From Octopus bimaculoides (lineage: Eukaryota): a stretch of DNA of 64,000 nt. The position numbers were made by a program, and so were the translations under genes. Each line of letters begins with the position of its first letter. Position 1 is the first letter of the stretch. The notes below the pieces were generated by a model. It saw only the letters and a program-made list of their open reading frames with translations, was not told the origin of the DNA and ran no database searches. This document shows, in pieces, positions 12,900-61,833 of the stretch. Where the stretch lies: positions 156,262,969 to 156,326,968 of the forward strand of contig NC_068981.1 in assembly GCF_001194135.2 (NCBI RefSeq). The letters run 5' to 3'.

Positions 12900-15475
12900 T
12901 ATACATGTGTGTACACCTATTCATGTATACGCACATGCATACAGACACATGCACACACACATGATGGTGCAGATGGTATATCTCTCTCATTCAGTGATGA
13001 AGGTTCAGCTGTTTGATCAACTGAACTTCTTGCTCTTGAATTATCATGTAAGTGGTTAAGCATTCCACAGACACATGTACCCTTAATGTAATTCTCAGGC
13101 AAAAATCACTGTGACACAATTTGTGGCTAGGCTGTACTTTTTGAATTACAGATAAAACTCTTGAATAATTTAAGTGAAGCTGTAATATATTGAATTAATT
13201 AAAACTTATATTTTTTTCTGATAGTAACTCAGGCACTGCTAAACCCCTCATCCCTCTACCTCTTGTTACCCTTATTGCGTCCAAATCCACCAGCTCCACA
13301 CAAACCGCTATGTCCAGTCTTTACTCTCCAAAATATCAGTCCTTTGGAATCTCACCCTTGCTATTGAGCTGCAACAGTTTACATAGAGCATTAAAAACAT
13401 AAAGCTTGCCTGTCTTAGATGGCCTGCCGAGATCATGAACATTGTCCTTTCTTCCAGATTCAGTAACTAAAAACCACAAAAAAATGTTATAAGCAGATCT
13501 TTTATCAAATTTCTTCCAAATTATTGATAAGATATTCACTTGTCTAATCCTCATAATGAATTTTCTAGCTATATAATTTTCAAATTACTTAATTCAATAG
13601 CTGTTCTCTTTCAATATGACCATTTTAGATATAATACTGAAATATTATTGTAAAATTCCTGTCTTTTACAACTAAACTATATAGTCTATTCTTACATGTC
13701 TTTATCCATTATTATTTTAATTTATAACTTTTCTCTTACAGGTTATACTGTTTATTTTCAGTAAGGACCAAAGGAATTTGCAACCAAGGTTTTCAGTTTT
13801 TTTCTTTATTATTTCTTTATTTATTTATAACACAGATATTTTTTGTTTTTATCAATCATATATCAATCTATTCTGGAATATGAGGACATTGTTTTTATAT
13901 AAAATTTCAAAACATATCCCACCAGGACATAATAGCTTACCACAACCCAAGGAATATACTTTTCACAACAAAACTCCATAAAATATAAAAATAATGCTTA
14001 GAGTAACAACATTTGTTTACATGAGAAATATATAGTGCAATTTAAGCCTCAAAAAGATTCTCAAACAAATTAAAACATATGTGGAAGAATACTTATCGCT
14101 TGTCTAGTTTCTGGAACCATTTCTGAAAATCCCTATATCATAATGGGCTTTGTAAATAAAACTGCTGTTTCATACTGGATTTATTTTTCATTGTGTAGTA
14201 CCAGTGGTGAGCAGAGTTGGAGAACAAAAGAATGTTTTGGATATATTACACATTTTGTTACTCATATTTCTGTTGAAATACAGTCTTTGTTTCTAATTAA
14301 TTCTGGAAATAATGAAGAATTTGTTATAACTTCATCATTATTGATCTGGTGTTTGGAACTTAAATTAACATGGAATTTTGGAAGAAAGTTTAATTTAGAT
14401 CATTTTAGAACAGGAAATTTGTATTATAGAAGTAAAGGTGGTCGCAAGTTGTTGGTATCAAAAAGGTTAAATCAAATTCCTAAGATTTTGAGACTCCAAG
14501 AAAGAATGCCCTTGTGTTTTGAAAATATGATATTCAAAATGAAGTATATAGTGTTTAAAAACATAGTTACATGCATACACACAAAGACAGACTAGTGTAG
14601 TGTCTGGTAAAAATGATGGGTTTTATTTCTACCTCACTGTATTTTTTAATGTTTTTCTTCCAAGCTTTGTTCCATTTTCCTGTTTTGTGTGTGTGTGTGT
14701 TTCACTCTCTTATTTTCTTTTAGTCATATTCTGTCTCTACCTCTTCTCTTTATTTCGCATTGTCTCCCCTCCTTCATTTTGATATCATACATATATTTTT
14801 CTTGCTCTCTCTCTCTAACATTCACCCATTCTATATCTCTTATTTATTACGTCTCAAATTCCCTCTTTCTAATGAGCTTATCTTCATTCTGCCTCTCTCT
14901 ATTTATTTCTTCCACTCTTTCACTGACTGTTCACTCCACTATCATATGTCTGCTGACTATTTCTCTTTCCTCAACCTACTCTCTAAATAATATCTTACCT
15001 ATCTATTTATCTATTCTACTTCTCTTTATTTCTCTCTCTTCCACTTCTCTCGACACAGCCACTGATTTCTCCCTGCATGACTGAGAGAGGATAACTCACA
15101 AACAAAAAAACACATATGACTTTAGGGTTTTTATGTATTAAGACATAAAAATGCATAAAAATCAGTAATTGAAGAAAACTAATAGTACTCTATATCACCA
15201 AACATTATATAGCAAAGTTCATTATTTTGACTCATTTGTATGCCATGGGGCTAAATTTGTATTTGCTGGAGATGCATATTAATTAACTAAAGTTCTAAGA
15301 CTATGTTTTTGTGGGAAAATTGTAAGTAAATTTACTTGCATACTGTATGTATTCCTGGATAGGTCGCACCCTTAGTTTGGGGTTGTCAAAATAGGTATTT
15401 GTAGTGGACTCGCAGATAGGTTGCATTATAATCTGGCAGGTTACATGGCCCTTTTTTAATGTAAATATAACTAAT

Positions 15476-15870: not shown

Positions 15871-16538
15871 AATTTGAATCTATGTTGTCAAAAAGAATAA
15901 TACTCAAACTTCCAGTTTCTGCTTTCTAGTAAACAAACGTCACAAAAATGTTTCCATAACAACTTGGAAACTGAAAAGGCCAGGCCCAGGGTATGCCCCT
16001 GGACTACTGATATGCCACTGTCTACTTCAGATCCCTGTGATGTCCGCACCTCTGATTTTTGTTGAAATTATTGAAAGTGTGACCTATCTGCGATTCATGT
16101 AGGATCTGATGCAGCAAAATGTCCAAGTGTTGTTTATGTTGACATCTATTCCATGTACAACTCTTAAAAGACACTTGCTAAGCTGCAGCAAGATGGTCAA
16201 ACTGGGTAGCTGTATAAAATGTATGGAATCTGTGGTATTGTGTTTTGCAGTTTTTAACCATTGCAATATGTACAGAGGAAAGAACACAGATGTATTTTTG
16301 TTTCAAACTTATTTTAGCTGCTTTATTCACTTTTTTCATTACCATGGAACAAAGTTGTTTGTTGTTCCGTTAGATTTAATTGGTTGCATTTCTAACAAAA
16401 ATATAGATTATTTTATATATGATCGCATAAAACTATTCATTACCTTGAAAATGTTTATATGAAATGTCTTTTCTATTTTTATTTTTTTCGTTTTGAATTA
16501 CATAATTTTCTTATCATTTATTGTTGTTTCTATTCTAG

Positions 16539-19407
16539 GGTAGTGATTCAAGTTTCAACTCAATTACCTGAGTCTCGGTCATGCTCACCATATTTCCGAA
16601 AGGACCCAAATGATATCATTCAACAAGAATGCGGATCAGATCAATTAGCAATATCTAATTTCAAAGCTATATTACCTCCAGGACAAAACAATATATATAT
16701 GGCATCATCCTCACCTAAATCGAACAATCAGAAGGTATCTTCTATTTCTCCCCCCTATCCTGTTTTATTGGGACACCCAAGTTATTCATCTCTAAAATCT
16801 CAGCCACAAGGCAATAAACTACTGACTCTGTCTTCAAAAGCACCATCTCCTGGCTCCATTAATTCTTCATCACACAGTATTTCTCCTGTTAGAAATCCGT
16901 CTCCTGTTCAGCTTCAACTTGTTACCAATAATAATAATTTATCATCATGTGAAAATGTTGCTTATGGTAACAATCTTTTGCAACTAAAACGAACACAATC
17001 TCCTGCCCTGATTCAAACACTTCTGCAAAATCGAGATCCTTCTCCAAATCAAAGACTGTCATCAACAATAGTAAATGTTGCACCAGAAGGATTTCAACAA
17101 AAAATCTTAGTAACACCATCTGTATCACCAAACAGAGTTGTTGGTACAGATCAATCATGTGAAGGATCTTCTACTATATTAATAACAGCCGATCCCAATC
17201 CTATTATTAATAAAGTAACACAACCTCAAGTGACATATGTGAAAACCACCCCAATTGCTGTATCATCACCTGAGCCATCTCGCACTACACCAGTCACATA
17301 TTCACAAATGCAACCAACTACCCAAGTGTTTTATATGAAATCAACATCTCCAAATATGCCTCAACTTTCATCTCAGTTACAAGTACAACCATTTCAAGGT
17401 ATGCAAATTAAACAAGACCAACTTATTCTTAATTCAATAATTGTTGATAAGTCACAGACCTCAACAGATAAAAATGTAACATCGTTACAAGGCTCACAGC
17501 CATTACTTTTATCTGTTCCAAAATCTACTGAACAAGAACAAACCATTCTGGGTAATGAATTAGAATTTCGGCAGCCAATTTATAATTCTTCATTAACTAC
17601 ATCTCAGCCTGCAACGTCTTCACTATCATCTTTGGATCGATTGACTCTACCAACTTGTCACTCAAACGAAGATAAAACATTGTCAACAACTGTACAATCT
17701 GTATCTGCTATTTCACAGGCACCTATATTAGCTCAAAGACTTGCTGCTCCTTCTGTTAATAATACCATATTTTCTAGTCAACTAACTTCTTCTAGGTTAG
17801 TCTTACCTTCTAGTGGTTCAGCAGTACTACCAACAGGTTTGGCAAATACTCCCAATATCCAGTTGATACCAACATCAACTAACTTAACAAATAATTCATC
17901 CCAGTTAAACATACTGTCTGTTCAGAATAATAGACTTTCTGCTCTATCATCTACAGAAAACTCATCTTTTTTGCAACATGCATCACCCACTCAGATTTCT
18001 TCCATAGAGAATGAGCCTAGAGGTAAGTTTTTGGTTTCAAATGCAGCACTAAATGTTCAACCTGCAATGGTTACCTCAAACCCACAGTTAGCACCATCTA
18101 TCACAGAACGTTTGCCTGTTAGTAATGCTTCTATGACTGGTAACACAGGTCTTATGGCTTCACAGTTGCACCCAACATTTGTTGACAGACTGTCAATGAC
18201 AAACAAAGATAATGCTGTCACATATTCCACAGTTGTTGTTACAACTCCACAGTTTATTACAGCTCCTACAAATACCATGAGAAGTGATTTGACTAATGTC
18301 TCAGCTGTAAAAAGTATTCTTGCTGCCCAGAATATATCTTCTAATTTAAATCCAGCTGCAAATAATTCTATCTTTAAAATTATTACGCCAACAGTTGGAG
18401 TTAGTCAACAACCATCAACACAAGCTCCAAAATTAGTTTTAACTGAACCACCTGAGTCATCACTCCTTAACTCTTCACTAAATCAAAGATTTCAAGCTAA
18501 TCAAACAGCCATGTTACTTAATACAAATAACTCTGGCCAGCATAATTTTGCACAAATTAAAGATAATATGCAACCTCAGATCATCTCATTTAATCCTGTT
18601 TCTTTTGAAATACCAGCTGAGTCATTTAGATTCATTGAAATGCAAGGTCAACCATTAAAAACAACGTCGAGTAATATAATAAATAATACTGTGACTAACA
18701 ACATTTCTGTTGATAAACCAATAAATATTGTTACTAGAACGGACTCTGGCAATGTAATGAACCCTTCAAATATTTTTGTTGTGTCTTCTGCCTCAGAAAC
18801 GTCAGTGCAATCATCAACTAGTGTTAGCACCAAGTCAAATGAGAATATAAATTCTGAACTCCAATCCACATCTAAGTTGCCACCTTTGGAAAATAAATTA
18901 TATGTTGAAGAGAACAATCCTTCTGTTACTCAAAAAGAAACTGCTTTTTCTTTCCGTGCATTACCAGTGAAAGATTCCCCAGCTGAACCTGTGAAACCAA
19001 AACGCCCTGTTAGGAAAAAAAAAGATGATGATGATGTCAATCCATTTTTTGCTCATTTACGTGTTTCTTCAGCATCTCTTTCAAACCAAGGAGGTTTACC
19101 TCCTTTTAACACGCTCCAGACTACAAGTGAAGAGACTAAAACCAAACAGTCTTTCTCAGAAATTAAAAATATTTTACATAGTAAAACAGTTGATGATCAG
19201 ACTAACTTTCAGTCAACTTCTCGTGGATTAAATAAAAATACTTTCAACCAATCTAATAATACTAAGGAAACATCGGATCCCTTAGATTCTTGTCTCAAAG
19301 CTAGTTCTAGTGATAATCAGTTGAATCAAAAGTGTATTGATAAAGATAATCATACAGAAGAAGAGAAATCATCAGAGACTGATGATAATACAGAAAGGAA
19401 GCCCATT
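16539..19407 (+). CDS. DNTTIP1: DNTTIP1 giant coding exon (2,869 nt), S/T/Q/P/N-rich low-complexity N-terminal extension
   Basis: Stop-free frame (ORF track 16459..19464). Acceptor tttctattctag|G at 16538/16539, donor ATT|gtaagt at 19407 (phase 0), which matches the next exon. First internal Met is at 16699. Confidence 0.8.
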
Positions 19408-19714
19408 GTAAGTATATCCTCTTATTATTATTTTTTTTTTTTAATATTCTTGGTTTCCGTGTAAATGTAACACAACTGGAAATGTATTCAAATATTTCAG
19501 ATTTCAGTTATTATCATTATTATCATCAATTGTTTTAATGCCAACTTTACTAGGTTGGCATGCATAAGATGAAAGTTATTGAGTTTTTTTTCTATAGCTG
19601 GACGTTTTTCTTGTTGCTTACCCTTAATTTATTTGCAACTAAAGTACTATTTCTTTTAGTTCTCAATGGCAGACTATAAACAAAGACACTGTCGCATAGA
19701 TTGTGACATTGTTT

Positions 19715-19747
<33 letters not shown>

Positions 19748-22700: not shown

Positions 22701-22896
22701 ACTATGATGCTCCCTTACTACTCCTGCTCATGATCAGAAGTGCACATATCATCAGCCATTAAGGGACATGCTCAACTGGTTATGGTCAAGCAAATCTGTG
22801 GTATTGACCAGAATATTTGCTGTAGCCCATCTTTTTTACCAAGACAAAACATGTTCACTTCCAATCAGTTAAGATCAGAAGCCATTACATCAGGGC

Positions 22897-22927
<31 letters not shown>

Positions 22928-27911: not shown

Positions 27912-27956
<45 letters not shown>

Positions 27957-28825
27957 TACACACACACACACACACATACATATATACACACACATATACA
28001 TATACATACACCTATATATAGATATACATATACACACACATTCATACATGTGTGTTCGTGTACAAATATTTTTTTGTATCTATGTAACTATATTTAAATT
28101 TTAAGGCTACTGTCCACTGTGTAGACAATACAAAGGTAATTTTTTGACTTATAATAGAAGTGCTTGGATCACTAATTTCTCCTGCTAGCAATGCTGCAAA
28201 CCTTTTCCTTGGTTAACTGTAGATTGTTTCATGGGTAGAAAATAATTTTCTTTTACATATTTCTCAGATACCTTGTTGGTACTTTTCTGATTGAACATGG
28301 GGTTGTGGATAGTGTATGATATATTCCCTATTTATGCCTCATTTACTGATATGAGAGAGCACATGGTCCATTGTTCTGTTGAGTATTTGTGTATATACAA
28401 CTGTTCAAGATACAGATATGAATACGTTTTCTTATGGATGCAGGCATGGTTGTGTGATGAAAAAGTTTGCTTCTCAATTACATGATTTTAAATTTTGTTC
28501 CACTGCATGAGACATTGGGCAAGTGTTTTCAACTGTAGCCCAAGGCTTGTGATTGGATTTGATAGAGAGAAACTGAAAGAAACACATTGTGTGTGTGTGT
28601 CTTTGTCTTGACATTATATGACTGTTGTAAATGAGCATCACTGTCATACAAGCAGTGTTCATTATTTCCAATCTACAATGAAAACGTGTCCAACCATGGG
28701 GAAATATCTTTCATGGAAACAAGTGAATGTTGACAACAAGAAGGGTATCGAGTTGTAGAAAATCTGCCGAAATGAATTCTATCTGACTTATGCAAGCATG
28801 GAAAATTTAGATGTTAAAAGGATAA

Positions 28826-28860
<35 letters not shown>

Positions 28861-30991
28861 CACACATATAATGTACACAGATTCACCTATTAAAATGGAA
28901 TTGTTATAGTTCCAATTATATCATTTGTCTTATCTTCTATTTCAGCCAAAGCCATTCAGCATGCGGTTACAGACTTTGAATAACTTTCCAGTTAGTCAGG
29001 CTTATAAGTCTACATTCCGATGTCATGCAGCAGCTATATCAAGGGCTAAGTAAGATATGAACTATTATAAATCGTTTAGTGAAGGCAAGAAATTTATATA
29101 AATATATATACAAATGTGCGTGTGTATGTTAGTACAAACAAAGAAGAAAAAGTATGCAATACATTTATTTGAAGTTGAAATGTCATACCGCCATCACTTC
29201 TCCAGGATCTCATTTCTCCATGTTTTAACCCTTTTGTTAGCCTCTTTCTAGTAAAACCTGTTGCCTTTTTGAAAATAAGGAAGATTTTAATAATAAAAAA
29301 AAAATTGTCATTAATAAGCTGATGCTTGCAACATAAATTAACATAAAATTTTGATGAGAAATTATAATTTAGATTTATTTTATATGAGTTTTGTTTCACA
29401 GAACCAGGGTTAAGGAACTTGAGAGTAACAACTGACTAAATATAAGCTTTGAATAAATATTTTTTATCTATATGTAAACAGTGTGTGTGTGTGCATTCAT
29501 GATGCTGACATGACAATAGTTTAGAAGTTCACTTTGCAGTTATGTAATCCAGATCAGATTACATCCAGTCACACTGATCACTCACTCCTCTCTTGTTTTA
29601 CAAATTCCAGGGTAGCCTGCATTACTAGCTCCACTAAATCATTGGACCTGATAAGACAAAATTTACAAAGATTCATCAACAAAGAAATTGACCATGTCAT
29701 TCAGGATTATTTAAAGGTAAGCTTGCTTCATTTGTTTATTTCTTTAACCTTTTGCCTGTCCAAAGAATTTTCATAAGTTTTGACCTAAACGTCCATGTTT
29801 GTTTTCAGACTTTTAGTTAACCCTTGAAGTTGCATGGCTTGGTAGATAAGGGAATTTGGTTCACAATAGTATTGTCATGAGTTTGATTCCCAGCAGCGTA
29901 TTGTGTCCTTGAACAAGACACTTCATTCCCATTGTTCCAGTCCACTCAGCTGACAAAAATGAGTACCTGTATTTCAAAGGGCCAGCCACAGGTTCCCTCC
30001 ACTGTTAGGGTGTGACACTTCTTCTCACAGCTGTCCTCATCCATACACAATACATGACCATACCAGCGCAGTCATCTCTCTTGCACACCACATGTGATGC
30101 TTCTTACGTCTGACTTTTCTCTCAGGGCGCTTACACTCTGTCGTGTATGCACACTGGCATTGTACATTATCTGGTAGTCAATGCAGAGACTAGGGATAGA
30201 TGAGTGGTTGGTAAGAGCTGTACAAGCCCTGTACGGGGATGCTGTCAGTGAAGTGAGGGTTGGCAACGAATATAGTGAAGAATTCCGAGTAGAAGAATTC
30301 CCATCCAACACCTCTACTTCTACTTGTAGTACATTACCAGGGACAGGTTCAATTCATTGCTATGTAGATAGCAATAAAGTGAACCTGTTAACTGACATTA
30401 AATTGAACCTGTTAACTGACACTGTTTACTACATTTTTCTCTATCTAAATTTACAGTTGTATTATTTTGCAATTAATTTTTTATACACTTCAATTTTACA
30501 GAAATTCTTTAATCCTGGTATAGAAAACATTCGCTTTAATAATGGACTAAATGCCGTGAAAGATGAACATGTGCAATCAGTTTGTCAGAAGATTCTAGAA
30601 GAGGTTTGTATTTCATTTTTTTTTTTGTTTTCTTTAATATTGTTACCTTATTCCTTAAAATTGAGATAAAATATGTACTCTCTCTCTTTTACTTGTTTCA
30701 GTCATTTGACTGCGGCCATGCTAGAGCACCGCCTTCAGTTGAGCAAATCGACCCCAGGACTTATTCTTTGTAAGCCTAGTACTTATTCTATTGGTCTCTT
30801 TTGCCAAACTTCTAAGTTATGGTTATGTAAACACACCAACATTGGTTGTCAAGCGATGTTGGGGGGGGGACATACACAGACACACAAACACACACACACA
30901 TATANNNNNNNNNNACTGCTAAGTTATGGGGACATAAACACACCAGCATTGGTTGTCAAGCGATGTTGGAGAGACAAACACAGACACACAA

Positions 30992-31022
<31 letters not shown>

Positions 31023-34000
31023 CACATACATATATACAACGAGCTTCTTTCAGTTTCTGTTTACCAAATCCACTCACAAGGCTTTGGTCAGCCCGAGGCT
31101 ATAGTAGAAGACACTTGACCAATGTGCCACGCAGTGGGACTGAACCCAGAACCATGTGGTTGGTAAGCAAGCTACTTACCACACAGCCATGTGAAAAGAT
31201 GGCCATTTGTTTGATAGTTCATATACAGTATTTGAGTATGTAATAATGTCTTTGTGTGCAATAGGCTATCTATGTGTTGATAGATTTAAGTTTGAAGGCA
31301 TGTTTTTAGAATCAAGGACCTGGAGTTCATTGCTTAAAAAAAATAAAAATAAAAATAATGTTGTGGCGGACATCCCCAAGTGAGAAGCGGGCTGTTCCAC
31401 TACTGATAAATAGTGAACAGACACAACAAGCAGCCAGTTAGCGAGGTATGCTGTTTGGGCCAGTCATGCAGACAACGAAATACGTCATCATAATGTGGGA
31501 CATATCAGTGGCAATGAGGAGTCGAACTACACACAGTGGCAGATAAGACTAACACAGAACTGAACTACACAAAGTGAAAAATAATATAAATCTGTTTGTA
31601 GGATTTCTGTCAGGTCGCTATGTGTTAGTAGCACATGGGGTAGCAGCACTACCGGTGAACAATGTAGACTGGTATTACATGCAACATTCTGAAGAGAAAA
31701 ATAATTCTGTATGGAAGAAAAAATAATAATAATAATGTGTGAAAGAAAAAAAAAATCTCAAAGCAGGGAGATGTTGTGACGGACACCCCCAAGTGAGAAG
31801 TAGGCTGTTCCACTACTGATAAATAGTGGACAGACACACCAAGCAGGGTCATTTTTCCATTTTTCATTCATTTTTTTTTCTCCCCACTGTGATGTTCTGT
31901 CTGTCCTTGTGCTGTCCCCTCTTTTTAATAATAAAAACTTCTTTTCTGTTTTTTTCTCAGGCTAAAAAGATGTACGTTCCAGATCGTCAAAATATAAAGT
32001 ATGATAAAGCACCCGTTGAGAATGTATCTGAACTAACAACAGCTGGCAGTTCTAAACGAGTAAGTTTTACTATTTGGATATTTTGATATAATCTCAAATG
32101 CACAATTTCACTCATTAGCAATTATTTTTTATATTTCTATATATGTTTGATTACTAGCCCTTTGGAAATTAATCAAGAATTTTGAAGGCTTTAGTAAAAT
32201 AATTTTATTCATTAATTGATATACCAAGCTGGTGTTTGGAACACAACAGCAGAATGTTTATTCCATAAAACTACATTTTTAATTTCGGTAATGAGCAAGG
32301 CAGCGAGCTGGCAAAATTCTTAACACATTGGACAAAATGCTTAGCAGCATTTCTTCCAGCTCTTTATGTTCTGTGTTCAGACCCCACCAAGATCAATTTT
32401 GCACTTCATCTTTTAAGGGTTGATACAATGAAGTACCAGACAAGTACTGGGATCAGTGTAATCATATTGTCACTCCCTTCAAAATTGCTGGCCTTGTGCC
32501 AAAATTTAGAAAGAATTTATATAGTGAACACATTAAAATAGGTGGTCTCCAATGAAAGAACCAGTTGCAATCCCCAGCCCTTTGGTACCAAAAGGGTTAA
32601 TATGACTAAACTGATATTTGAGATTGCACAATTTATCATAGGATATCATTCATAATTTTATTTTTAAAATGCTTCATGATTTAAAGGAAATGGACACTCA
32701 CTTATAAGTATGTTTTAACTGTGAATTTAAAGATCAATTCTTCTGCATCCTTCAAAATTCCATGCTTCTCAAAATTCACCACCATTTCTCCTGACATGCT
32801 TAAGTATCCTTTCCTTTCTCTGGTTCTTTTACAGTTCATTTCCCTGTCTTCTTGTATTTTATTCTAATTTACTGTGCATACACTTTTAGATTTCATTGCA
32901 TCTTTCTTTTCTTGTCTTATTGCCACTTCCTAACCCCTCTTTTATCCTTTTTTTCAACAAGTTGTAGGCCCCTGAGCACTTTATATAAGAAGTTCATTAT
33001 TGCTATTGCTATATTGATCATCAAATCATTAGTAAATTTATTATGTCTATGTATTTCTATGATTTTTATAAGTCTTTTTATTTTTTTTATTTCAGTCAAC
33101 ATTTAACCGCAAAAGACGATCCTCAGACACTGATTCAGACATTGCTCTTCCAGTCCAAAAGAAAAAGGTAAAGCTTTGAATTTTCTCATTTTTATATTGG
33201 TTCTTCTTATTGTTTATTTTAGGTAAACCCTAATTTGAGCAAACCTATAGTCAGAGATATTCTGGCATTGACCATCTCATGTTTTCGTATATCCAACCCT
33301 TAATAAGATGGTAGGGTATGATTTGGTGAAATTTGGGTACTATTTCTAGCAAATCAAGTTACCATGAAGAGCATAGGTGGGGAGTGCCTCAGTACTTGAG
33401 AAACTGTGAGAATACACAGCACTGAAAAAAATAATGACTCATTAATTTTACAGATTTATGTTAGATTATTAACAATAAGCACATTAGAATGTTTGGATTC
33501 ATAACCATGTAGTAACTCACTTTCCCATATGCTTCTCTGTGTGACTTACTAACTCATCATCATCATCATCATTAAGCATTTTCACACACGCACATACACA
33601 TGGCAGACTTTTAGATTCCATGCAGTAAATCCACTCAAAGCTTTAGTCTGCCCAAAGCTATTGTAGAAGACACTCAAGTTGCCATGTAGTGGGATCAGAC
33701 CCAAAATCATGTGAATGGAAAGCAAGTTTCTTTACCACATCACCATGCCTGCTTCTATGCTATGTCTAAGATAAGACAGAAATGAATACAACAGTATATA
33801 TTAAATTACTATTTTGATCTTAAGGCTTAAACTAATTCTTCATGAGTTTATGGAAGCTTCATCTGCTGATGATTTCAAATCTGAATGCAAACAAAAGAGC
33901 CTGTACTCTCCTGGTGTAAGAGATTCTCTTGTTGGTTTGTTTTTATATCAGTTTCCTTCACAGTTACAAAGCTTGTATTTTTTAGTAAAGATGAGTTATA

Positions 34001-37000
34001 ATCAATGAGTTGAGGTTGATAAAATGAAACATGGCCTATGAAGTTAAGCTGTAGGTAGTGGGGGAAAAACTGAATATTGTAAATCACTTATTCTACTGGT
34101 TTATTGTCTTACCCTTGACCATTGCTTTATATTTCATTGAACTTGTTTCTTTTTATGCTTTTTTGTCAATAAAGAGATACACATGAAACATATATACATA
34201 TGTACCTAACACATATGTATCCAGACCAATGAAAGCATAATTTGTGTCACTTAGTTTGCTAAAAATAGCAGCCAAATCACCCTCAGATCACACTCAACGG
34301 TCTAGTCACAGATATAGAAAAAGATGGGATGGTCATAGGAAGAATGCCTTTGATCACACATTTACTTATGCAATAACATAAACGCAAGCACGCACACTTA
34401 TGTATGTATTCATCATATGCAAAGTACTTAGAGTTTACATCTCTAAGTAAACTTTGTTAACTTTGCTACTCAAGGTCATCAACAAATTTTGCTCAATTTT
34501 TTTATCTTCATCTTCATGCCAGTATTTTATTTTGCTTGTCAAACTACCCACACCATTTTCTTTATATATCTTCAGAATTTAATTTGTCAGCTAAATTTTA
34601 TTTTTACATGCTGCTTTCATTTTTTAAATTTATTTTCACAGAAAAAAGGCCGTCCCCCAACGCATTCAGGGTAAGTTGATTTTTTATTCCTTTTCTCTTA
34701 AATTCTATTCTTTTATTCTTTTGCTTGATTCAACTACTGTACTGCAGCATCAAGGTCAATTTCTTTTATAAAAAATCTTCATTGCCTTCAGAAGGAAGAC
34801 TGCAGGATTTAAGTCCTAAAGTACTGGGCAACAAGTCAACTATTAGAATGAGATAGCCATGTTTAGAAATTTGATTAAAAGTTTGACTGAAACAACTATG
34901 TTTAATATCCTATCTCTATGTCCTGATTACTTCTGTGCTCTAAGGCTAGTCAAATAGGGACTGATTAGGGCTATTTCAACTATGAGTATTAAACATTTTG
35001 TAACCTATTTTAAACAATACACTGACTGAATTACAATTTATTTTGAAAATGATCAAGCACCAACTTTTTTTTCCATATAATGACCACTTTTGTCTAAATG
35101 TAAGCACTTTAAAACTGGTAGTTTTTCTAACAAAGAACCAGAGACAGTCTTGAGCTGATTGGTATCAAAAAGGTTAAAAATCATTAAACAGGACTTCTAC
35201 TTTTGTCTTGTTTGATGATTCAATGCAGTTGCTTATGATTTATTTGCAATATCTATAAGAATAAAGCTTAGTACAATAATTAACTGTTCAGGTACAGTTT
35301 TTTTTTTATTCCTCTTCAAAAGATGTTATTAAGTATTAAAAGGGCAAGGGTCAAGAATTTCGGGTTAAATGAAGACCGCTGCATTAGATATCCTATGGTG
35401 TGTGGCTTGATGCCTCACATCCGAATGTGTTCCGTTTACTTCTTGTATCTCAGAAAATAATCATTAGTAATGCATTAGTCAGTTCAAAGGGTTCTTGTAC
35501 ATACACAAAGCAAATCTTTACACGTAAGGCATGTTGCCTGCCTTACCTAAGTCCACTTTCCTGAAAATGTCCTGACCACATTTTTGACTGAACAATGATG
35601 TCATGTTGTAATGTTGCTGCTTAGCATTCAAGTTGCCCCCCCCCAGACTGACTATGTTATCCAATTTAACCTTTTAAGACAGTAGGGTGTAGTTTGAAAG
35701 ATATTTAGCTGTTATTTCTAGCTGGTTGAGCACTCACATGGAGGTTCTTTTGTTGGCTAATGGACTATGTAGCTAGATTTTCAAAAATATTACTCTACAT
35801 ATTAGAATAGGAAAATAACATGTAATGCTGTTAAAGAAGACTATCAATAAACTGATTTGTGGAATCTCATTTCTGTGTATTTCTTAGGAGAGTAACACCT
35901 CAGAAATCTATACGTTCTGTTGAACCACTCAAGAGAGAAGGGCCAAAGGTAAGCTGATATTGCATTTTCTCAATATATTTGATGATGCTACTTCTTAAAG
36001 TATTTAATTCACATGTAGATTAACATGACTCAGGGTCTTTTAGTTGTAGGATCTTCAATTATTAATTTTAATATTTTATCTTTTACTTGTTTCAGTCATT
36101 GGACTGCACACATACTAGACCACTAACTTGAAGTGTTTTAATCAAACAAATCGACTGTAATACTTAGATTTTTAAGTTTGGTACTTATTCTAAAGGTCTG
36201 TTTTGCTGAACCACAAATGCCACAAGGACATAAACAAACCAACACTGGCTGTCGAATGATGAAAGGACAGACAGGCATTTACACACTCTGGGTTTTCACA
36301 CAGTTTCTATCTACCAAATTCATTCACAAGGCATTGGTCGGCCCAGGGCTATATTTGAAGGTACTTACCCATGGTGCCATGCATTGGGCTTGAACCTGAA
36401 ACCAGATAGCTGCAAGCTTCTTAACTACAAGGCCATAGCTGTACCTATACAATTACTATTTGCATATTAAATCTAAATGCTAATGAATAATGTACAACTT
36501 TTTTATCAAAATAACTTTATTAATGTACTGAAATAAAACAATGCAAAAAAATATTAAAAGCTGATGTATTTTTGAAAAATATTTTTCACTTCCAATCATA
36601 CTTTCTCTTCAGGCAAGGAGGTCTTGAATTTTTGCTGTATTTTGAAGCATTTTAAATGCTTTTCTTGTATATTCACGTAGACCTGTTGATTATTTTTAAC
36701 CACCTTCCATGTACTGATTTGTGTTTTCTTTCTTACAAACTGAGATACACATTATACTTCACCTGTCTATTTAATGGATGCTGTAGCTAACTTAAATCTG
36801 TCTTTTATTTTCTATTCTGTTCAGTTCATTGTCAGATGTTTGAACAATATTTGATAGTTGTCTTCCATTATTATAATATTTCTGAAGGTGGCGAACTGGC
36901 AGAATTGTTAGCTTGGCAGGCAAAATGCTCAGCAACATTTCATCCATCCTTATGTTCTGAGATCAAATTCCAGCAAGGTCAACTTTCCCTATCAACCTTT

Positions 37001-40000
37001 CGGGGTTGATGAAATAAGTACAATTTATACACTAGGGTCGGTGTAATTGACTATCCCCCACCCCCAAAATTCCAGCCTTATGCCTATAATAGAAAGGATT
37101 ATTATATTTTTGAAGGAGGCAAGCTGGCAGAACTGTTAGCATGACAGGCAAAATGCTTAGTGACATTTCTTCTAGCTTTGTGTTCGGGGTTCAAATTCCA
37201 CCAAAGTTGACTTCACCATTTGTCCTTTTGGGGTTGTTAAAACAAGTACCAGTTCAGCATTGAGATCAATGTTCTCAACTTACTCTCCCCGCTTAACAGA
37301 CATTGCCGGCCTTGTACCAAAATTTTAAATCAATATTATGATATATCTCTTAGACTTCTTTTTTTTTTTTTCGTTAGAGTTATTGAAAATGTCTCTATCC
37401 TCTATATACATTTGTGCTCATTCTATAAAACATTCTTATAAAATTAAACAAAAGAAAAGTGAGGGAAGAACAAACAAGGTGTATAAGTTTATCACTCAGG
37501 AAAAATATAAAGTTTATTAGGCTTTGGTCATTGTTCTGACTATCATATTCTAAACTTTTGATACACTCTTTTTACATAAAAAAAATTCTACATAAAAAAA
37601 TTGTCTTACTTTTTAATTTCAGTGGGATCCAGAGCGCCTAATTTCAGAAACACTATTTGTAATGGGTGCAAGGGCCAATAAGTAAGTAAAATGAATTTTT
37701 GTTTAATTAATTAATTTCAGCACACCCTTCCCACCTCCATCACCTGTACCGGAAGTCTCTATCTTCTAACCTCTATCGGATGTTTCTCCCATGAACACCT
37801 CCAAAGGTTTAATGTTCCCCCATCCCTGCTTAGGGTTTATCTCTTATGTAATGTAGTGATTATGTAGCGCTTAAAATGATGGTATAGTGTAGGCAGGTTG
37901 AAGGCTATTGTATGTTTATGAGTTCTGCCTCACCAGGAAACAGGAAAGATGGCTATTTATAAATTCCAAATCCTTCCCAGGTGAAGAATGCACCCCACAA
38001 CATAGATTAGTAGTTAGCGACTTCAGGATCAGGGTAAATGGATGTCCAGAAGATGACCAGCATAGAGAAGAAGGGTCTGGAAGCTTAAGGATCCTGCATA
38101 TGGGCAGAGATTTAGAGACATCATCATCATCGTCGTCTTCATTTAACGTCCGCTTTCCATGCTAGCATGGGTTGGACGATTTGACTGAGGACTGGTGAAA
38201 CCGGATGGCAACACCAGGCTCCAATCTAATTTGGCAGAATTTCTACAGCTGGATGCCCTTCCTAACGCCAACCACTCAGAGAGTGTAGTGGGTGCTTTTA
38301 CGTGCCACCCGCACGAAGGCCAGTCAGGCGGTACTGGCAACGGCCACGCTCAAAATGGTGTCTTTTATGTGCCACTCGCACAAGAGCCAGTCCAGGGGCA
38401 CTGGCAACGATCTCGCTTGAGCATCACATGATGTAGAAGACAACTGGAGGTTCCTATGGGACAACCTGTTGAGGGCTACTGACCAGATCTGTGAATGATG
38501 CAAAGTCCCCTCTCAACCCAAGGTAATATGGTAGTGGAACAATGTAGTTGACAGGGCCATTAGGGTAAAGAAACAGGCATGGAAGGACTGGAAGAATGGT
38601 GATAGCAGGAAATTGTATCAGATTGCCAGGAGACAGGTTTACTTAGCCAGAGGGGAAGCAGATGAGAATAAATTTGCCAATGTTCTGTGTCGTGAGGACC
38701 AGAGACTTGAAGTGTTTTGTGTTGCAAAACTGTGTGTGAGAGAGAATTGTGATGTCATAGGAAAGAAATGTGTCCACATGAATGATGGCTCACTTGCATT
38801 TACTGAGGCTGCAAAGAGAAAGACTTAGAGATGCCACTATAAAAGGTTGCTAAATGAACAGAATGAATTGGAGAAAGAGAGAATCAGTTTAGATGAGATG
38901 CGGTTTGGGTTTGTGCCAGGGTAAAGCACTGCTGATGCTATATTTCTGGTATTTTTTTCTATTTTTAAAGTGATTATTATTAATAGACATTTTCAATTCA
39001 GACACCAAAGTCGTATATATATCATCTTCAATATCATAAGAGTGAACTATATTTTAATATAATTATTCATTTAAATGTACTCCAAGTTTTAATTTTTCTT
39101 TTTTCTTTTTCTTTTAGAGCTCTTGGATTTGGTGCAACAAGAGGTCGATTATATATAAAGCATCCAGAATTATTCAAAGTAAGTTTTCTTTGGCTCATTC
39201 TATATTCATTGATTTGTTCCTTTTACTTAATTGTCTTCTACTATTTAAGTTGTTGTTTTGTCGCTCTCTGGCTCATCAGTTCCTGTTAAACCATACAACC
39301 TTTACTAGCATGGAAAAAGTAACATTAAATGATGGATATATGTATGTATGTATATCTTCTTCGGCTGTACATCATAGGTCTATGTTGACTGTTGTTGTTC
39401 AGTAACCATCTCTGGCAGGCTCACATGCGGGCTACAAAGCCTGCTCTTGATCTACACCAGTGATAACATCTGCAGCAGGTGAATCTGTATGTATGTATAT
39501 ATATATATATATATTATGTACTAAATTTACCCACAAGGCATTGGTTGAAATTGTAGAAGTAAGCTCACATCTTTTCCCAGTTTTCTTGGGGAAAATTCAT
39601 GTTACTGAAACATCAGTATAAACCACAAATACACAAATGTGTACATAACGTTTGTGTCAGATAAGAAAGGACAGAATCTTAAACCCTTTTGAGAGTCTCT
39701 CTGAAGTGAGGAAGTTATCAAAATAGTAACCTGATGCCAAGGTGGTGGTGTGTAGCAGATTAAATCTGCTACTATCTCCCAAATTTTATTCACAAGGCTT
39801 TGGTTAGCTCAAAGCTACAGTAAGAGACAGTTAGTCCAAGTGCTGCACAGTGAGATCAACACTCAAATTTATTTGTAGTGAAGTGAACTTCTTAAGTATA
39901 CAGTCATGGCTGCTCCCATTAAATAGATAATAGATAAGTATTGTCTGCTTACTAAAGAAGACTTTATCTGAAACAGATTAAAATTACAGATTTAAAAGCT

Positions 40001-43000
40001 CAAATGTAACAACTTAAAAACCCTGGTTAATATTTTGATGAGACAATCATTTATGCCTTCTTTGAACAACTGGTTGTAAGCATTTACAGGGTGTTCAGGC
40101 TAAATTTGACAGTTTGTATAAAAGGAAACACAATATCCCATCCAAAAATACAAGTATTTTAGAATATAAAAAAATATCAAGTGATTATGGCTGAGAGATA
40201 AAGGTTTACTCAAAGCAGCCACTCTCAGCTTCCACCATGGCTTGAAGGTGGCTCTGGAACCTGACACATGTTCCTCACTGTGTCCTTGGGAAGATCTTCG
40301 AATACCTCCTTGATCTTGGCCACCAGCTCAGCTTTGATGTTGCAGGCAGAGCAGTTGATATCTTTATCAATGCACCCCACACATTGTAATCCATGGAATT
40401 ACAATATAGGGAATTAGGAGGCCAGAAGTTGGGGCTGATGAAGTCATAGAAATTCTCTGACAACCACAGCTGCCTCTTTCTGGCAGTATGGCTAGGAGCC
40501 AAATCTTGCTACTACACATATGGCCTTCCAACAGCAACACTGTCCTGCCAGAGATTGACCAGTCTCCAGCAGCTTCACTTGGTTACCTGAATTAAGCCTA
40601 AGGCTTTGTTTATAGATGTGGGGATGAATTCTGACGTGCAGACATAGTCGGAATACCTGTGTTGTCCCTTCCTGCTGGTTACAGCTTTATAGTCTCCATT
40701 GCAACTGTCCATGTCATGTCTTACAGCTTTTACAGTGTTCAGCAGTGATGATGACAGCATTTTGATACCCAGTGCAAATCATCATGATACAGGTAACTTT
40801 TCACCTGTATTCAGATGGCTTCTAGTCCAACATGTCAGCTATTTTTCTCAACTTCAATTTTAGTCATTATGTTCTCCAACATTGCTGACTGTTCCAGAAA
40901 AAAGGTTGTCATAAAAATCATCAAATTTAGTCTGAACATTCTGTATTATAATTTTTATGTAAATGTATTCATTTTTATATGAAATACATATGTATGTAAA
41001 TTTGTATTCTTTACAGTACTCTGGAGACCAAGATGATAAACAGTGGTTATTTGATAACCACCATATGCCTGCTATCGGAGGAAAAGCCTATATATTGTTA
41101 TATAATGACATCGAAAACCTTGCTAATACTGATGAATATCGGTAAGTTGAGATGCTTTATTTAAAGTTAAAATAACATTTGCTTGTGTATCATAAATATA
41201 AATAATACCTTGAATAATTTTAAATTTTCTTTTGACAATTTTATTCTTTATTCTTTTATGTTTTGGTTTTGATATCATGTTGTACTTCCTTTATGCTTTA
41301 TTCCCTGTAACTTTATTATTTCTTTTTATTTCAGTAACTATTTGGCAATTTGGCACTTCCTACTTTAGATATTAAAATGTATTGTTATATATTATAACAT
41401 AATAGCTTATTGTGTAATAGCTTTTTTTTAATTACTATTCCAATTTTTATTATTTGATTGTACTAGTAATTTATTAATTTTATCATTCAATTTTCATAAT
41501 GGTTTAGTAATTATTATGAGTGTAATATCATCATTATCATTGTACATCTGTCTTCCTGGCATGAGCTGGTTATGTTTCACATCTCATCACCCCCACTCCT
41601 TTGTCATCTGGTACACATGACAACAAGGAAAACCTAACCAACTGTATTGTTGTGTATCTCATTATTTTTAGCATGATTTTTATAGCTGGTTGCACTTCCC
41701 ATCAACAGCCACTTTACAATGTAGACATATTAGTAATTGGGATCTATTTTAAAACGGGGGCCACATTTTTCATTAATGTTTTACGTAGTGTTTTTGGTAC
41801 GGAAAGACTTTCAAACTTCGTATACTTATCTATTTTGTGTTATAGAGCAGAAAAATATTTTTGTATTCGAATTTATTTCATGTAAAAAATTGTCTTATTT
41901 CGATAATTTCAACCAATCACTAACAAGTATTCAGTTGTTTACATTTACTCCTTTGGCTGATTAAGCGATGTAAAGCGTATTTAATCTCCATACCTTCGTT
42001 TTATTTGCTTTTTTCATCTTAAATTTGCTTTAACCCCTAACCCTAACCTTAGGGTTAGGGTTAATTGTTTCAGAATCGTTTGTTTATGTAGTCGGCACTT
42101 AATGTATATCGGCTGAATGGACGTCAGTGATTGGTTGAAATTACAGAAATACGACAACTTTAATATGGAATAACTTAGGGATTTCTTTTTTTTTTAAGAA
42201 GACTAAGAGAAAAAGATGTTTTATATGACACATTCTACCAGTGCTCCAAGTTTCAAAGTGTTTCGTTAATGAAAAATGTGGCCCCCGTTTTAAAAAAGAT
42301 CCAGTAATTGTAATTAAATCAAAAAACTAATAATTATATAATTATGATGAGATAACAGACTTTTTGCTCTTTTATTCCTAAGTTAGTAATTTCCAAAATA
42401 AAACATATTTCTGCCTCTTTGCCAAATTAAACTATATTTTTAATCTTAATTATTTTTTGTTCTAAAATATTAAGGTTTTTTTAGTTTTTTTCTTTTTTTT
42501 GTGGACTTTTTGTTTTTGTTTGTTTTGTTTTTTTTTGACACATTAAATTTCATGCAAGGTTGCTTTTGTCTTGCTGTTTTAGTTCTTTATATCATATGAA
42601 AGAACTATATACTGACATTGTAAGACACCAAGCTACCAATATTCACCAANNNNNNNNNNATTACTTCTTTCTACTGTTGAAGTGTTGCTGTTTAGTAACA
42701 CTTGTCAACATTGATCAAGCATCTGCTGTCCAGCATTGAAAAATTTTGTCACCATTATAATTTGGACATCCTAGCTTTTGCACTGTCAGTTAACGCTTAA
42801 ACATATGTCCAGAGTATACTATAGTGCCAGAGGCAAGAAAAAAAGCCATATCATCAGAAACAATGTTTTATTTATTCAGCTAGTGTGACTTATCGCTTAT
42901 CTTGACAGAATATACAAAGTTTTGTTTGAAATTAAAAAAATTTAGTTGATGTGTTTGGTTTGCTTCTCTTAAAAACACTAAAAATGTTGGTGGGGTGAAT

Positions 43001-46000
43001 TTAACTTGACATTTGTTTTGTTTTTTGTTTTTTCATTTTCTATATTTGAAGCAAGTTTGTTGCTTTGTGCTTCGTCTGAATTTGAATGACATCAAAACAA
43101 TTTCACTAATGTCAATTTCCATTCTACAGGGAAAATCCCAATGTGATACTCAATGAATTGGTGCTTTTCAAGGTTCCTCTTTGGATGTTAGAAAAGATGA
43201 AAATACAAATGAATGCTTTACGTACAGATCTTCCTAAAACCAAAACTCCAAGCATAAACAATATACATTCCAACGATACAATTATTTCATTGACTAAAGA
43301 AGTACAACCAGCAGTCATTCAGGTAAATTACTAAACTCCTTTATCTAAGACAATCTAAACTTTATTTACTGCATAAGCAGTAACCTAACATTAATAATTA
43401 CATTCTTAACTCATCTCCCAATTATGAGTGTTTACAGTGATTACTGCAACAAAACTTTTCCTTAATCATTACTAGCTAAATTGAAAACAGGTTGGAAAAT
43501 GAATGTATCATAGATTCTGAAGAAAGGACAGTATGAAAACTGAAAGAGATCCTGGCCAGACATAAGTTCAAAGAAGTAGTAGTTGATGCATATGACAAGA
43601 AGGGGTAGGAGATAAAAGCTTATAATATAGAGAGCATTTAGGAGGCAATCTACTGCAGACCACTGACCAGAATTGTGACTGGTGCAAAGTTTTTGCCAGA
43701 CAAAATGTGACATGGTGGTGGAATAGCACAGGAGATAAAGTCATAGATGCTGAAAATTAAAAAAAGGAGCAAGGAACAATATCAAATAGAAGAGAAGCTA
43801 TATGTCATGTGTATGTACCATAAGTAAACCCAACAGAACGACCATATATTTAAAGTTGACATCATCATCATCATCATCATCATCGTTTAACGTCCGCTTT
43901 CCATGCTAGCATGGGTTGGACGATTTGACTGAGGACTGGTGAAACCGGATGGCAACACCAGGCTCCAGTCTGATTTGGCAGAGTTTCTAGATAAGCGATT
44001 TGACAGTTATACACTCAAATGTGCAATTAAAATATGATGGCATGAAAAGCAGCTGGACCATCAGGGATGGTTGCTGAAATGGTGAAAATACTCAATAATA
44101 TTAGACACATTAGTCAGTCGTGTAGTCGTCATATCCAGCGACTGGTGTAACAGTATCATCAACAACTGTTACAAAGGCAAAGAAGATATTCTAGAAGAAA
44201 GCCACAACAGAAGCATCAAACTGATGGACCACGTTAAGAAAATAATGGAAATAGTTATGATTAGTAAAAGAGGCAGATTAGATAAAATGCAGTTCAGGTT
44301 TGTGACAGAATAGGGCACCACTAATGCACTCTTCATAATGAAACAACTTCAGAAGTTCTTAGCTTTAGAGCAAGCAACTTCATCCAGCATTCATTTACCT
44401 GGAGAAGGTTTTGACAGGCTACCACACTCTGTAGTCTGTCTTGTGGTTGCTAAGAAAACTAGGTGATGAATGGCTTGTATGAACTGTGCAAGACATATAC
44501 AGAGATGTCATCAGAAAAGTGAAAGCCAACAATGAGTTCAGTGAGGAGTTTAGCATGAAGGTAGGTGTCCATCAGGATTTGGTTCTTAGCCTCCTACTAT
44601 TTACTATAGTTCTCCAGGTTATAACAGAGGTGTTTAAGACTTCACATCTATCAGAATTCCTGTATGTTGATGAACTGTTTCTTATAGTTGAATTTGCTGA
44701 AGATTTAGAGAAAAAACAATTGCAGCGTGGAAGGTGTTTATAAGCCATTTAAGAAACACACATGCAGCACAGAATTTTGTCAGTGAACAGGTTGCGGTCT
44801 CAAAGCGACGAAAATATTTTGACACAAATTAAATTTAAATGTTGAAGTGAATCTAACGGTTTTTGTGTGTTTCTTAAATGGCTTATAAACACCTTCCACG
44901 CTGCAATTGTTTTCGTTCCAGCACACGATCTCAGATCAGGTCACTTGCTATGCAAGTACATCTCCGTAATTAGAGAAAAAAATTTCAAATATAGAAGCAA
45001 TAACTAGAATAAAGAAACCTCAAGGTAATCATCATCATCATCATTTAACATCCGCTTTCCATGCTGGCATGGCTTGGATGATTTGACTGAAAACTTTTAA
45101 GCCAAGGGGCTGCACCAGGTTCCAATCTGATTTGGCAAGGTTTCTATGGTTGGATGCCCTTCCTAATGCCAACCACTCTGAGAATGTAGTGGGTGTTTTT
45201 TACATGCCACCAGCACAGGTGCCATTGACCTGACACCGGCATTGGCTATGACTACAATCTCACTTGGCTTGACAGGTCTGTCCAGAAAATAGAAGATAGA
45301 TGAAAAACAGTGACACTGAAAATGATGGGAAATTTATGCACTTTCTGTAATCATATGTAAAACAGATTCACACCACAAAGTAAATGAGTATTTTCTCTCT
45401 CGCTCACTCATCTGAGTGTTGCCTGTTTTATTCATTTGCCTTTTACAGTTTAACTTGTTTAACCTTCAGTATAAATTTTTTTTTTTAAATGTTGCTTAGC
45501 ATTTTCTAAGGTCATTTGTTTCATTGTTTTAAATAATACAATTTCCATTGCAAATATCCTGTTGTTTGAGTTCAGACAATTATCATGTAGGTACCTTCTA
45601 TTTTCGCTTCATGAGAAAATGAAACTTAGTAGAAATTACTTATTGAAAAGGAATATTTCTTTAGTAAACTTGTTTTTTTTTTATATTGATATTCATAAGT
45701 ACTGCAATTAGTACAACTTAACTATCTTGATTTAAATAAACCTCTTACATTTGTAGATTCAATAAACTAGATACCTAAAGCTGCTAGTAGAGGCATAGTA
45801 TTTCAGTATTGACAATTATTAAGGAATTAAATGTTTGCATGTCTTTATAGGTTGCTGAGCTAGATAAATAATGAACAAGTAGAGAAGTTACATAACTTCT
45901 GGTTTAGATTGTTAAAACAGTATAGAAGAAATGTAACTCAATACCATACTATAATTAACATAAGCTAGCAAAGAAGCTTCTATGATGTTACTAAACCTGC

Positions 46001-46428: not shown

Positions 46429-46483
<55 letters not shown>

Positions 46484-51334: not shown

Positions 51335-51381
<47 letters not shown>

Positions 51382-55178: not shown

Positions 55179-55226
<48 letters not shown>

Positions 55227-61778: not shown

Positions 61779-61833
<55 letters not shown>

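Follow-up and report, generated by a model that had tools for sequence, protein, structure and literature searches.

A predicted disordered, coleoid-restricted N-terminal extension of DNTTIP1 encoded by a 2.9-kb exon in Octopus bimaculoides

Introduction and main finding

Within the MiDAC HDAC1/2 complex, DNTTIP1 (TdIF1) is the subunit that dimerises and binds DNA and nucleosomes; it is usually a compact two-domain scaffold. We have analyzed 64,000 nucleotides of Octopus bimaculoides DNA (contig NC_068981.1, positions 156,262,969 to 156,326,968; hereafter the window, in which all positions below are counted), where a single exon of 2,869 nt, located on the + strand at 16539..19407, is the second coding exon of the DNTTIP1 orthologue. 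This exon adds an N-terminal extension of ~960 residues to an otherwise complete DNTTIP1 core. As judged from sequence comparisons, the extension has no detectable relative beyond coleoid cephalopods and has been kept by purifying selection since the octopod-decapod split, and the best explanation overall, to which we give a probability of about 0.6, is that it forms a disordered, motif-bearing arm on MiDAC.

Structure of the long exon and identity of the gene

The stop-free frame that includes the long exon spans 16423-19464 on the + strand and comprises 1,013 codons, the second-longest such run across the six frames of the window being 190 codons. Within the exon, each of the remaining five frames contains 41-104 stops; the longest open run obtained in 500 shuffles of its sequence was 175 codons, and base composition predicts ~2e-27 runs of the observed length in the window. 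The exon is bounded by an acceptor AG at 16537..16538, preceded by a polypyrimidine tract, and by a donor GT at 19408..19409 (ATT/gtaagt), both on the + strand. G16539 is the last base of a codon split across the junction; the 956 codons after it are complete, which leaves the exon end in phase 0. Since it begins mid-codon, an upstream exon is required, and the long exon therefore is not the entire N-terminus: the original prediction of an extension of 900+ residues from one exon holds as to size, but not as to the whole N-terminus. A search against Rfam gave no match anywhere in the window.

Translation of the exon gives a sequence with 100% identity to residues 26-981 of the Octopus bimaculoides "uncharacterized protein LOC106868443 isoform X3" (1,412 residues; XP_052827854, UniProt A0A0L8HUW4), and the exon as a whole covers residue 25 (its last codon base) to 981 of that isoform, whose numbering is used throughout. 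Spliced mapping of isoform X3 placed 14 exons on the + strand of the window, all with AG/GT borders, which together give residues 26-1412 without mismatch. The first seven are located at 16540-19407, 28946-29049, 29611-29716, 30502-30603, 31961-32059, 33096-33167 and 34642-34670, and the last seven at 35888-35948, 37623-37681, 39118-39178, 41017-41141, 43130-43322, 48025-48108 and 53184-53381, the stop codon TGA (53382-53384) coming directly after the last of them.

The 13 exons on the 3' side of the long exon encode the complete DNTTIP1 core. The coding exon that comes next (28946..29049; PKPFSMRLQTLNNFP..., with the PKPFSMR segment) marks the start of the pan-metazoan conserved DNTTIP1 sequence, as it contains a motif common to chiton, bivalve, arthropod and priapulid proteins. 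According to Pfam, the spliced map and the human alignment, three exons (29611..32059) encode the dimerisation domain and the start of the linker; seven exons (33096..43322) specify the KKKKKGRPP-containing basic linker together with the SKI/SNO/DAC-like C-terminal domain of TdIF1, and the last two coding exons (48025..53381) encode the C-terminal tail. The Pfam profile DNTTIP1_dimer (PF18192) matches residues 1025-1092 over profile positions 1-68 of 69 (E 3.6e-21), a region also matched by PDB entries 4D6K and 6Z2J, and the DNA- and nucleosome-binding domain is represented by TdIF1_2nd (PF21229), found at residues 1181-1277 over profile positions 1-97 of 97 (E 2.4e-43) and matched by PDB entry 2MWI (E 4.1e-40). 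Moreover, alignment with human DNTTIP1 pairs octopus residues 1019-1287 with human residues 59-317 (E 1.6e-54), and the GRP-containing basic linker is present, octopus PVQKKKKKGRPPTH aligning with human PLPK-KRKGRPPGH.

A query with the core retrieved 160 matches at E<=1e-5, coming from molluscs, arthropods, priapulids, bryozoans, echinoderms, hemichordates and vertebrates. All 120 listed matches carry PF21229 and nearly all of them also PF18192; among the matches listed, those with a descriptive name are called DNTTIP1, and the cuttlefish orthologue bears this name as well. The gene model itself has been public since 2015 (UniProt A0A0L8HUW4); public annotation labels the protein as an "uncharacterized protein" in Octopus and as "DNTTIP1" in Acanthosepion. 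Overall, the octopus protein has every DNTTIP1 feature that can be read from a sequence, and is a member of a known family with a lineage-specific addition rather than a new system. The structural annotation of the long exon as part of DNTTIP1 is close to certain. The original prediction, made from the letters of the window, was accurate in describing a stop-free 2,869-nt exon with canonical splice sites, in assigning the gene to DNTTIP1, both defining domains of which are complete, and in proposing a roughly 4-fold enlargement, the chain being 4.3 times as long as the human one of 329 residues.

Joining of the long exon to the DNTTIP1 core

The long exon is kept in each of the five O. bimaculoides RefSeq isoforms (1,334-1,455 residues), and is also contained in four O. 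sinensis isoforms, in the O. vulgaris model (1,412 residues), in Argonauta hians (1,372 residues) and in two Acanthosepion pharaonis models named DNTTIP1 (1,433 and 1,434 residues). Nucleotide comparisons were made with the Argonauta genomic locus (L002), a sepiid genomic contig (L003) and two mRNA-like Logan contigs from decapodiforms (L001 and L004). Contig L004 (SRR25158147; 5,053 nt, sepiid) holds one open reading frame (ORF) of 1,447 residues with both Pfam domains, while L001 (SRR27666064; 3,864 nt, with an Illumina adapter at its end) covers the distal extension and the whole core. Nucleotides 337-3283 of L004 represent the long exon from exact acceptor to exact donor (L003 2646-5529), nucleotides 3284-3387 resume at L003 14615, and L001 makes the same jump at the donor. 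Therefore, a 9.1-kb intron has been removed at positions orthologous to 19407 and 28946. Octopus, Argonauta and the sepiid have both splice sites of the long exon at the same positions: the AG/G position of the acceptor is the same in L002 and L003 and is used exactly by L004, and the orthologous donor is used exactly by both L001 and L004. An apparent frameshift at ~1214-1274 of L001 splits its extension frame into ORFs of 423 and 751 residues, and is probably an assembly or sequencing error.

The phase-compatible join to the PKPFSMR exon that had been proposed is thus the one on which all public models agree and which, at the orthologous junction, two decapodiform contigs use; the long exon is translated in frame with the DNTTIP1 core, and it is kept in octopods, Argonauta, sepiids and a further decapodiform. 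As regards the suggested check of the 19407-28946 junction with spanning reads, decapodiform contigs join the orthologous positions, but no spliced octopus contig was found in the contig collection, in which isoform X3 is not recorded as a called gene product, or with a junction-spanning protein query. In the octopus cluster, the Logan members (P0134-P0137) come from unspliced sequence and run into both introns.

Selective constraint on the extension

Between O. bimaculoides and Argonauta, the extension shows over 943 codons a nonsynonymous rate (dN) of 0.099 and a synonymous rate (dS) of 0.496, which corresponds to a dN/dS (omega) of 0.199, and the DNTTIP1 core a dN of 0.065, a dS of 0.541 and a dN/dS of 0.12. 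The coding constraint that had been supposed from the open frame is hence supported by an estimate of 0.20 for the extension. In the same comparison, windows of 100 codons range from 0.06 to 0.36, and the least constrained part of the extension is its last 250 residues (omega 0.34-0.36). When octopus and sepiid extensions are compared, dS is saturated, and dN/dS is still ~0.18-0.20.

At the DNA level, the long exon is 83% identical to Argonauta over 2,940 nt, while BLASTN against Argonauta gave no match in 1 kb of intron on either side of it, and the blocks conserved between the two species coincide with exons across the whole locus. In addition, 351 of the 956 extension residues (37%) are invariant in four coleoid sequences that span the octopod-decapod split. 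Together, the substitution pattern and the alignment indicate that the long exon has been under purifying selection since that split.

Anatomy of the extension

In agreement with the description of an S/T/Q/P/N/V-rich sequence, the extension consists of S 15.4, N 9.6, T 9.2, L 8.7, P 8.2, Q 7.9 and V 6.5%, with a net charge of ~0. It contains 19 [ST]P sites, 14 of them within the first 300 residues, where dense SP/TP sites had been pointed out. Eight SP sites, distributed over residues 41-295, are invariant (S41, S128, S140, S146, S179, S193, S221 and S295). RL dipeptides are over-represented (7 observed versus 2.3 expected; shuffle p ~0.004) and tend to come after D, E, Q or N.

In the coleoid alignment, islands of 5-23 residues alternate with variable, indel-rich stretches, a pattern that fits a region of linear motifs. 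The motif RSCSPYF (residues 38-44; 16576..16596), conserved as RS.SPYF, contains the first invariant SP site. The island KRTQSPALIQTLLQNRDPSPNQR (residues 175-197; 16987..17055) comprises a predicted amphipathic helix of the IxxLL type between two invariant SP sites, and is followed by QQKILVTPSVSPNRV (residues 211-225; 17095..17139) and by GMQIKQDQLILNSIIVDKSQT (residues 312-332; 17398..17460), in which octopus and cuttlefish are identical at 21 of 21 positions. Further islands are QAPILAQRL (residues 418-426; 17716..17742), which includes one of the seven RL dipeptide motifs, SQLNILS (residues 479-485), MVTSNPQLAPSITERL (residues 535-550; 18067..18114) and IEMQGQPLKTTS (residues 724-735). 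Towards the end of the exon, VNPFFAHLR (residues 858-866; 19036..19062) retains NPFFA.LR without change in all five coleoid sequences, the shortest island spanning residues 860-864. All these coordinates are on the + strand.

A basic patch resembling a nuclear localization signal (NLS), KPKRPVRKKK, had been noticed near the end of the exon. It is found at residues 844-853 (18994..19023, + strand) of Octopus and, as KTKRPVRKKN, in Argonauta, but it is not kept in sepiids, the corresponding sequence being KNAKTANKNDE in Acanthosepion and KNARAANKNDE in the other sepiid. By alignment, then, it is an octopod-only patch and not a classical NLS conserved in the extension; a separate basic stretch, KKKKKGRPP, is conserved in the DNTTIP1 core.

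With AlphaFold2, the mean predicted local distance difference test (pLDDT) score of the extension was 29.4, with no residue reaching 70 and values of 24-40 across all 96 ten-residue blocks, from an input alignment of five sequences whose shallow depth lowers confidence regardless. One secondary-structure element was predicted, an 8-residue helix (ALIQTLLQ) at residues 181-188 (exon residues 156-163). Residues 1-981 had no Pfam match at E<=1, and no chain among the PDB sequences matched them. Self-BLASTP of the extension (E<=10) revealed no internal repeats, and tandem duplication consequently does not explain its origin. On these predictions, the extension presents the typical picture of an intrinsically disordered region bearing short linear motifs; the disorder put forward in the original prediction is thus supported as a prediction (mean pLDDT 29).

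Distribution among animals

When 1.84 billion representative proteins were searched with an HMMER profile made from the extension, just the two coleoid representatives were recovered, and a word-indexed protein search with the extension gave nothing outside coleoids. Likewise, hhalign detected no profile similarity between the extension and the N-termini of bivalve and chiton proteins (probability 0.3%). At the level of sequence, therefore, the extension is without detectable relative beyond coleoid cephalopods. As no Nautilus sequence was seen, the time of its origin is bounded only by the separation from other molluscan classes and by the coleoid crown.

In 116 non-cephalopod DNTTIP1 proteins, the dimer domain is preceded by 34-352 residues (median 76, 95th percentile 231), the longest N-terminus belonging to a bivalve-like protein, versus ~1,010-1,060 in coleoids; this survey could overlook other very long forms, because the word index appears to miss C-terminal parts of long proteins. 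Indeed, queries with the core alone missed the long coleoid proteins themselves, even though these are 100% identical, the word index being apparently blind to distal parts. The longer non-cephalopod N-termini are also rich in S/P/T/Q, and low-complexity N-termini of 120-350 residues are frequent in other protostome and hemichordate DNTTIP1. The novelty claimed for the extension accordingly stands for its size and sequence, which are cephalopod-specific, but not for the presence of a low-complexity N-terminus as such. A full-text literature search found no paper on cephalopod or octopus DNTTIP1, on this locus, or on coleoid disordered chromatin proteins. Lineage-specific disordered extensions are common among eukaryotic regulators, and the octopus one is an ordinary kind of change that should not greatly surprise a specialist, though it is clean and well supported.

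A proposed motif-bearing arm on MiDAC and its alternatives

In the human protein, DNTTIP1 56-147 forms the dimerisation domain, which binds the ELM2 region of MIDEAS, and DNTTIP1 197-316 the SKI/SNO/DAC-like domain, which binds DNA and nucleosomes (PMC4344507). Residues 1-49 of human DNTTIP1, which adjoin the dimerisation domain, are required for MiDAC tetramerisation, MIDEAS is the subunit on which the complex carries its long regions of predicted disorder, and MiDAC components are substrates of cyclin A2/CDK2 (PMC7319964). The octopus extension ends 37 residues before the equivalent of human residue 59, directly upstream of the protostome-conserved segment NPF-x-MR...RAK. Being placed directly upstream of the segment equivalent to the human tetramerisation region, the arm would be displayed in several copies by each MiDAC particle.

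Based on these results, we propose that, at the assembly hub of MiDAC, each DNTTIP1 subunit may project a flexible arm of ~960 residues. About a dozen conserved islands in this arm would act as docking sites for partner proteins, and the N-terminal cluster of eight invariant SP sites, which brackets the predicted helix, may work as a switch operated by proline-directed kinases, probably such as cyclin A/CDK2. That an arm of this kind is present is the explanation rated above at about 0.6; for its operation as a phospho-regulated interaction platform, we would put the odds at even. The broader proposal, that the coleoid ancestor gained an arm without traceable homologue which gave MiDAC lineage-specific docking motifs and rewired its partners or genomic targets and the way in which cell-cycle kinases control it, is unlikely. 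Some considerations weigh against the disordered arm on MiDAC. Disorder in solution, partner docking, phospho-regulation and the assembly of a cephalopod MiDAC are inferred, and the low pLDDT is in part expected from the alignment depth mentioned above. Moreover, the charge-hydropathy value of the extension (0.446, versus a boundary of 0.415) falls slightly on the ordered side. Direct splice evidence comes from decapodiforms only, the Octopus junction being supported by gene models and conservation, and an ordinary-sized product, discussed below, would likewise run counter to the proposal.

Among the alternatives, the extension could be a tolerated low-complexity expansion, i.e., a passive spacer or entropic bristle without specific binding. 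Its S/N/T/Q/P-rich sequence, free of domains and repeats, would suit such a role, as would the faster evolution of its last 250 residues, and the unrelated low-complexity N-termini of variable length in other invertebrate DNTTIP1 suggest that the position tolerates insertions. A pure spacer, however, would keep length and composition but not sequence, and sequence conservation hence counts against it: omega is 0.20 overall with windows down to 0.06, 37% of residues are invariant over the octopod-decapod split, and discrete islands of 9-23 residues are nearly identical. We consider this account unlikely, and to the same degree the one along the lines of the original prediction, according to which MiDAC is altered by the extension acting as a prion-like domain or as one for condensate formation or transcription activation. 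The O-GlcNAc-based regulation also suggested there is likewise speculative. The extension is indeed long, polar and uncharged (N+Q 17.6%, S+T 24.6%) and predicted to be disordered, but it is poor in sticker residues (F+Y+W 4.0%, R 2.7%, G 2.5%), lacks repeats, and conserves discrete motifs rather than composition.

A slightly weaker candidate is that the extension holds one or more new folded domains, missed by AlphaFold for want of more than five close sequences. The hydrophobic content of 25.5% and the charge-hydropathy value would be in line with folding, the extension is more conserved than is usual for disordered sequence, and the alignment is shallow. Against this, pLDDT stays at 24-40 throughout with one 8-residue helix, the short islands lie between variable, indel-rich stretches, and Pfam and PDB sequences offer no match.

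It is highly improbable that the main product is an ordinary-sized DNTTIP1 arising from an internal promoter or start (e.g., Met-987, in the exon starting at 28946), with the long form being minor. An in-frame Met, the first in the core exon, does lie 6 residues past the junction, but none of the five O. bimaculoides and none of the four O. sinensis RefSeq isoforms is without the long exon, and BLASTN against the Argonauta intron revealed no conserved alternative-first-exon block in intron 19408-28945. Moreover, constraint at the protein level shows that the long form is translated. Finally, a chimeric model, with the long exon coming from a separate upstream gene or its frame ending at the in-frame stop 19462-19464, is scarcely credible. 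ORF callers on unspliced contigs do run past the donor to a nearby stop (P0004, P0134 and P0136), but the two intron-less contigs join the long exon to the core at the exact donor and acceptor, which effectively refutes it for decapodiforms, and phase and splice sites are kept in three lineages while the residues beyond the donor are not conserved.

Returning to the disordered arm, a conserved stretch of ~1,000 residues on DNTTIP1 itself shows that MiDAC architecture can be remodelled in one animal lineage, and supplies about a dozen conserved motifs and eight SP sites as candidates for partner binding and kinase control. MiDAC regulates neurodevelopmental genes. If the broader proposal above is true, the docking arm could bear on coleoid-specific developmental or neural gene regulation.

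Other features of the locus

The first exon of isoform X3 encodes 24 residues (MMADRNTDHLHSTNVADRDNAFRQ) and is missing from the window in a six-frame search; its Argonauta counterpart sits 34 kb upstream of the long exon. None of the first exons of X1, X2 and X3 was found in any of the six window frames, where an alternative 5' exon of 47 nt alone was recovered. This exon (13742..13788, + strand), belonging to isoforms X1, X2 and X4, was located by its peptide (..VILFIFSKDQRNLQP, then the first two bases of the R codon), has AG/GT flanks and splices to 16539. The block 13701-13851, comprising the 47-nt exon and its flanks, is 85% identical to Argonauta L002 33872-34023, and the alternative 5' end thus seems to be conserved. 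Isoform X5 starts from an internal Met (16699). For the sequence upstream of the 47-nt exon, RefSeq predicts peptides (e.g., ...SLSLSLSLSPSLSLPLSLP...) that resemble translated untranslated region rather than real protein. A 168-nt block (3567-3734) lying upstream of every mapped exon is 74% identical to Argonauta L002 21989-22164, and may correspond to an exon that is not translated, to an enhancer or to a repeat. At the other end of the gene, the 84-nt exon 48025-48108 is 91% identical in Argonauta DNA (L002 52455-52601), but it is skipped by the Argonauta protein model, in which 28 residues are missing; it may be a cassette exon or have been omitted in annotation.

Intron 19408-28945 contains ORFs of 123-164 residues on the minus strand at 23341-26388, one of which (24576-24971) matches the reverse transcriptase profile RVT_1 (E 1.6e-7, above the Pfam cut-off). 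The region resembles a decayed non-LTR retrotransposon and explains part of the length of this 9.5-kb intron, whose Argonauta orthologue measures 3.2 kb. An assembly gap (a run of N) lies at 23394-23430, with further runs at 30905-30914 and 42650-42659. In the intron between 48108 and 53184, an ORF of 145 residues (49288-49725, + strand) gives a sub-threshold match to the mariner-type Transposase_1 profile (E 0.0069; 16.7 bits versus a cut-off of 24), and is probably a transposase remnant. For each of the segments 38119-38277 and 43860-43932, the Argonauta locus contains more than one match (L002 34832-34979 and 44225-44369), which suggests a dispersed short repeat common to octopods. Dinucleotide and AT/AC-rich microsatellites are present in introns and downstream sequence at 46431-46541, 55181-55226, 61781-61829 and 27880-28034.

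Comparison with known DNTTIP1 proteins and MiDAC subunits

Vertebrate DNTTIP1, represented by the human protein (TdIF1, 329 residues; PDB 4D6K, 2MWI, 6Z2J/6Z2K and 9R4I), has the dimerisation domain, the KKGRPP linker and the SKI/SNO/DAC-like domain in common with octopus. Before the aligned core, however, human DNTTIP1 has 58 residues and the octopus protein 1,018, and this surplus is without vertebrate counterpart.

Other lophotrochozoan proteins are intermediate in length, namely those of the chiton Liolophura (535 residues), the bivalve Mactra (566), two unnamed bivalve-like sequences (704 and 733) and the bryozoan Watersipora (729), with cores that are 42-55% identical to that of octopus. 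Like the octopus protein, they have S/P/T/Q/V-rich low-complexity sequence just upstream of the conserved NPF-x-MR segment, but their N-termini comprise 120-350 residues and are without profile similarity to the coleoid extension. A short motif may be common to them (NPFSFQALP in chiton, NPFTFP in bivalve and TAFSFRALP in octopus), the likeness being seen by eye and without statistical support.

In C. elegans, the DNTTIP1 orthologue SAEG-2 binds SAEG-1, a homologue of MIDEAS/TRERF1, and HDA-2 (PMC3088716), which supports the complex being ancient; SAEG-2 is an invertebrate orthologue just as octopus DNTTIP1 is, with a giant extension unreported. Within MiDAC itself, a likeness is offered by the N-terminal region of MIDEAS (716 residues, predicted to be largely disordered and absent from the cryo-EM map; PMC7319964), which, although it sits on the other subunit and has no sequence similarity to the coleoid DNTTIP1 arm, is likewise a long, predicted disordered arm on the MiDAC scaffold.

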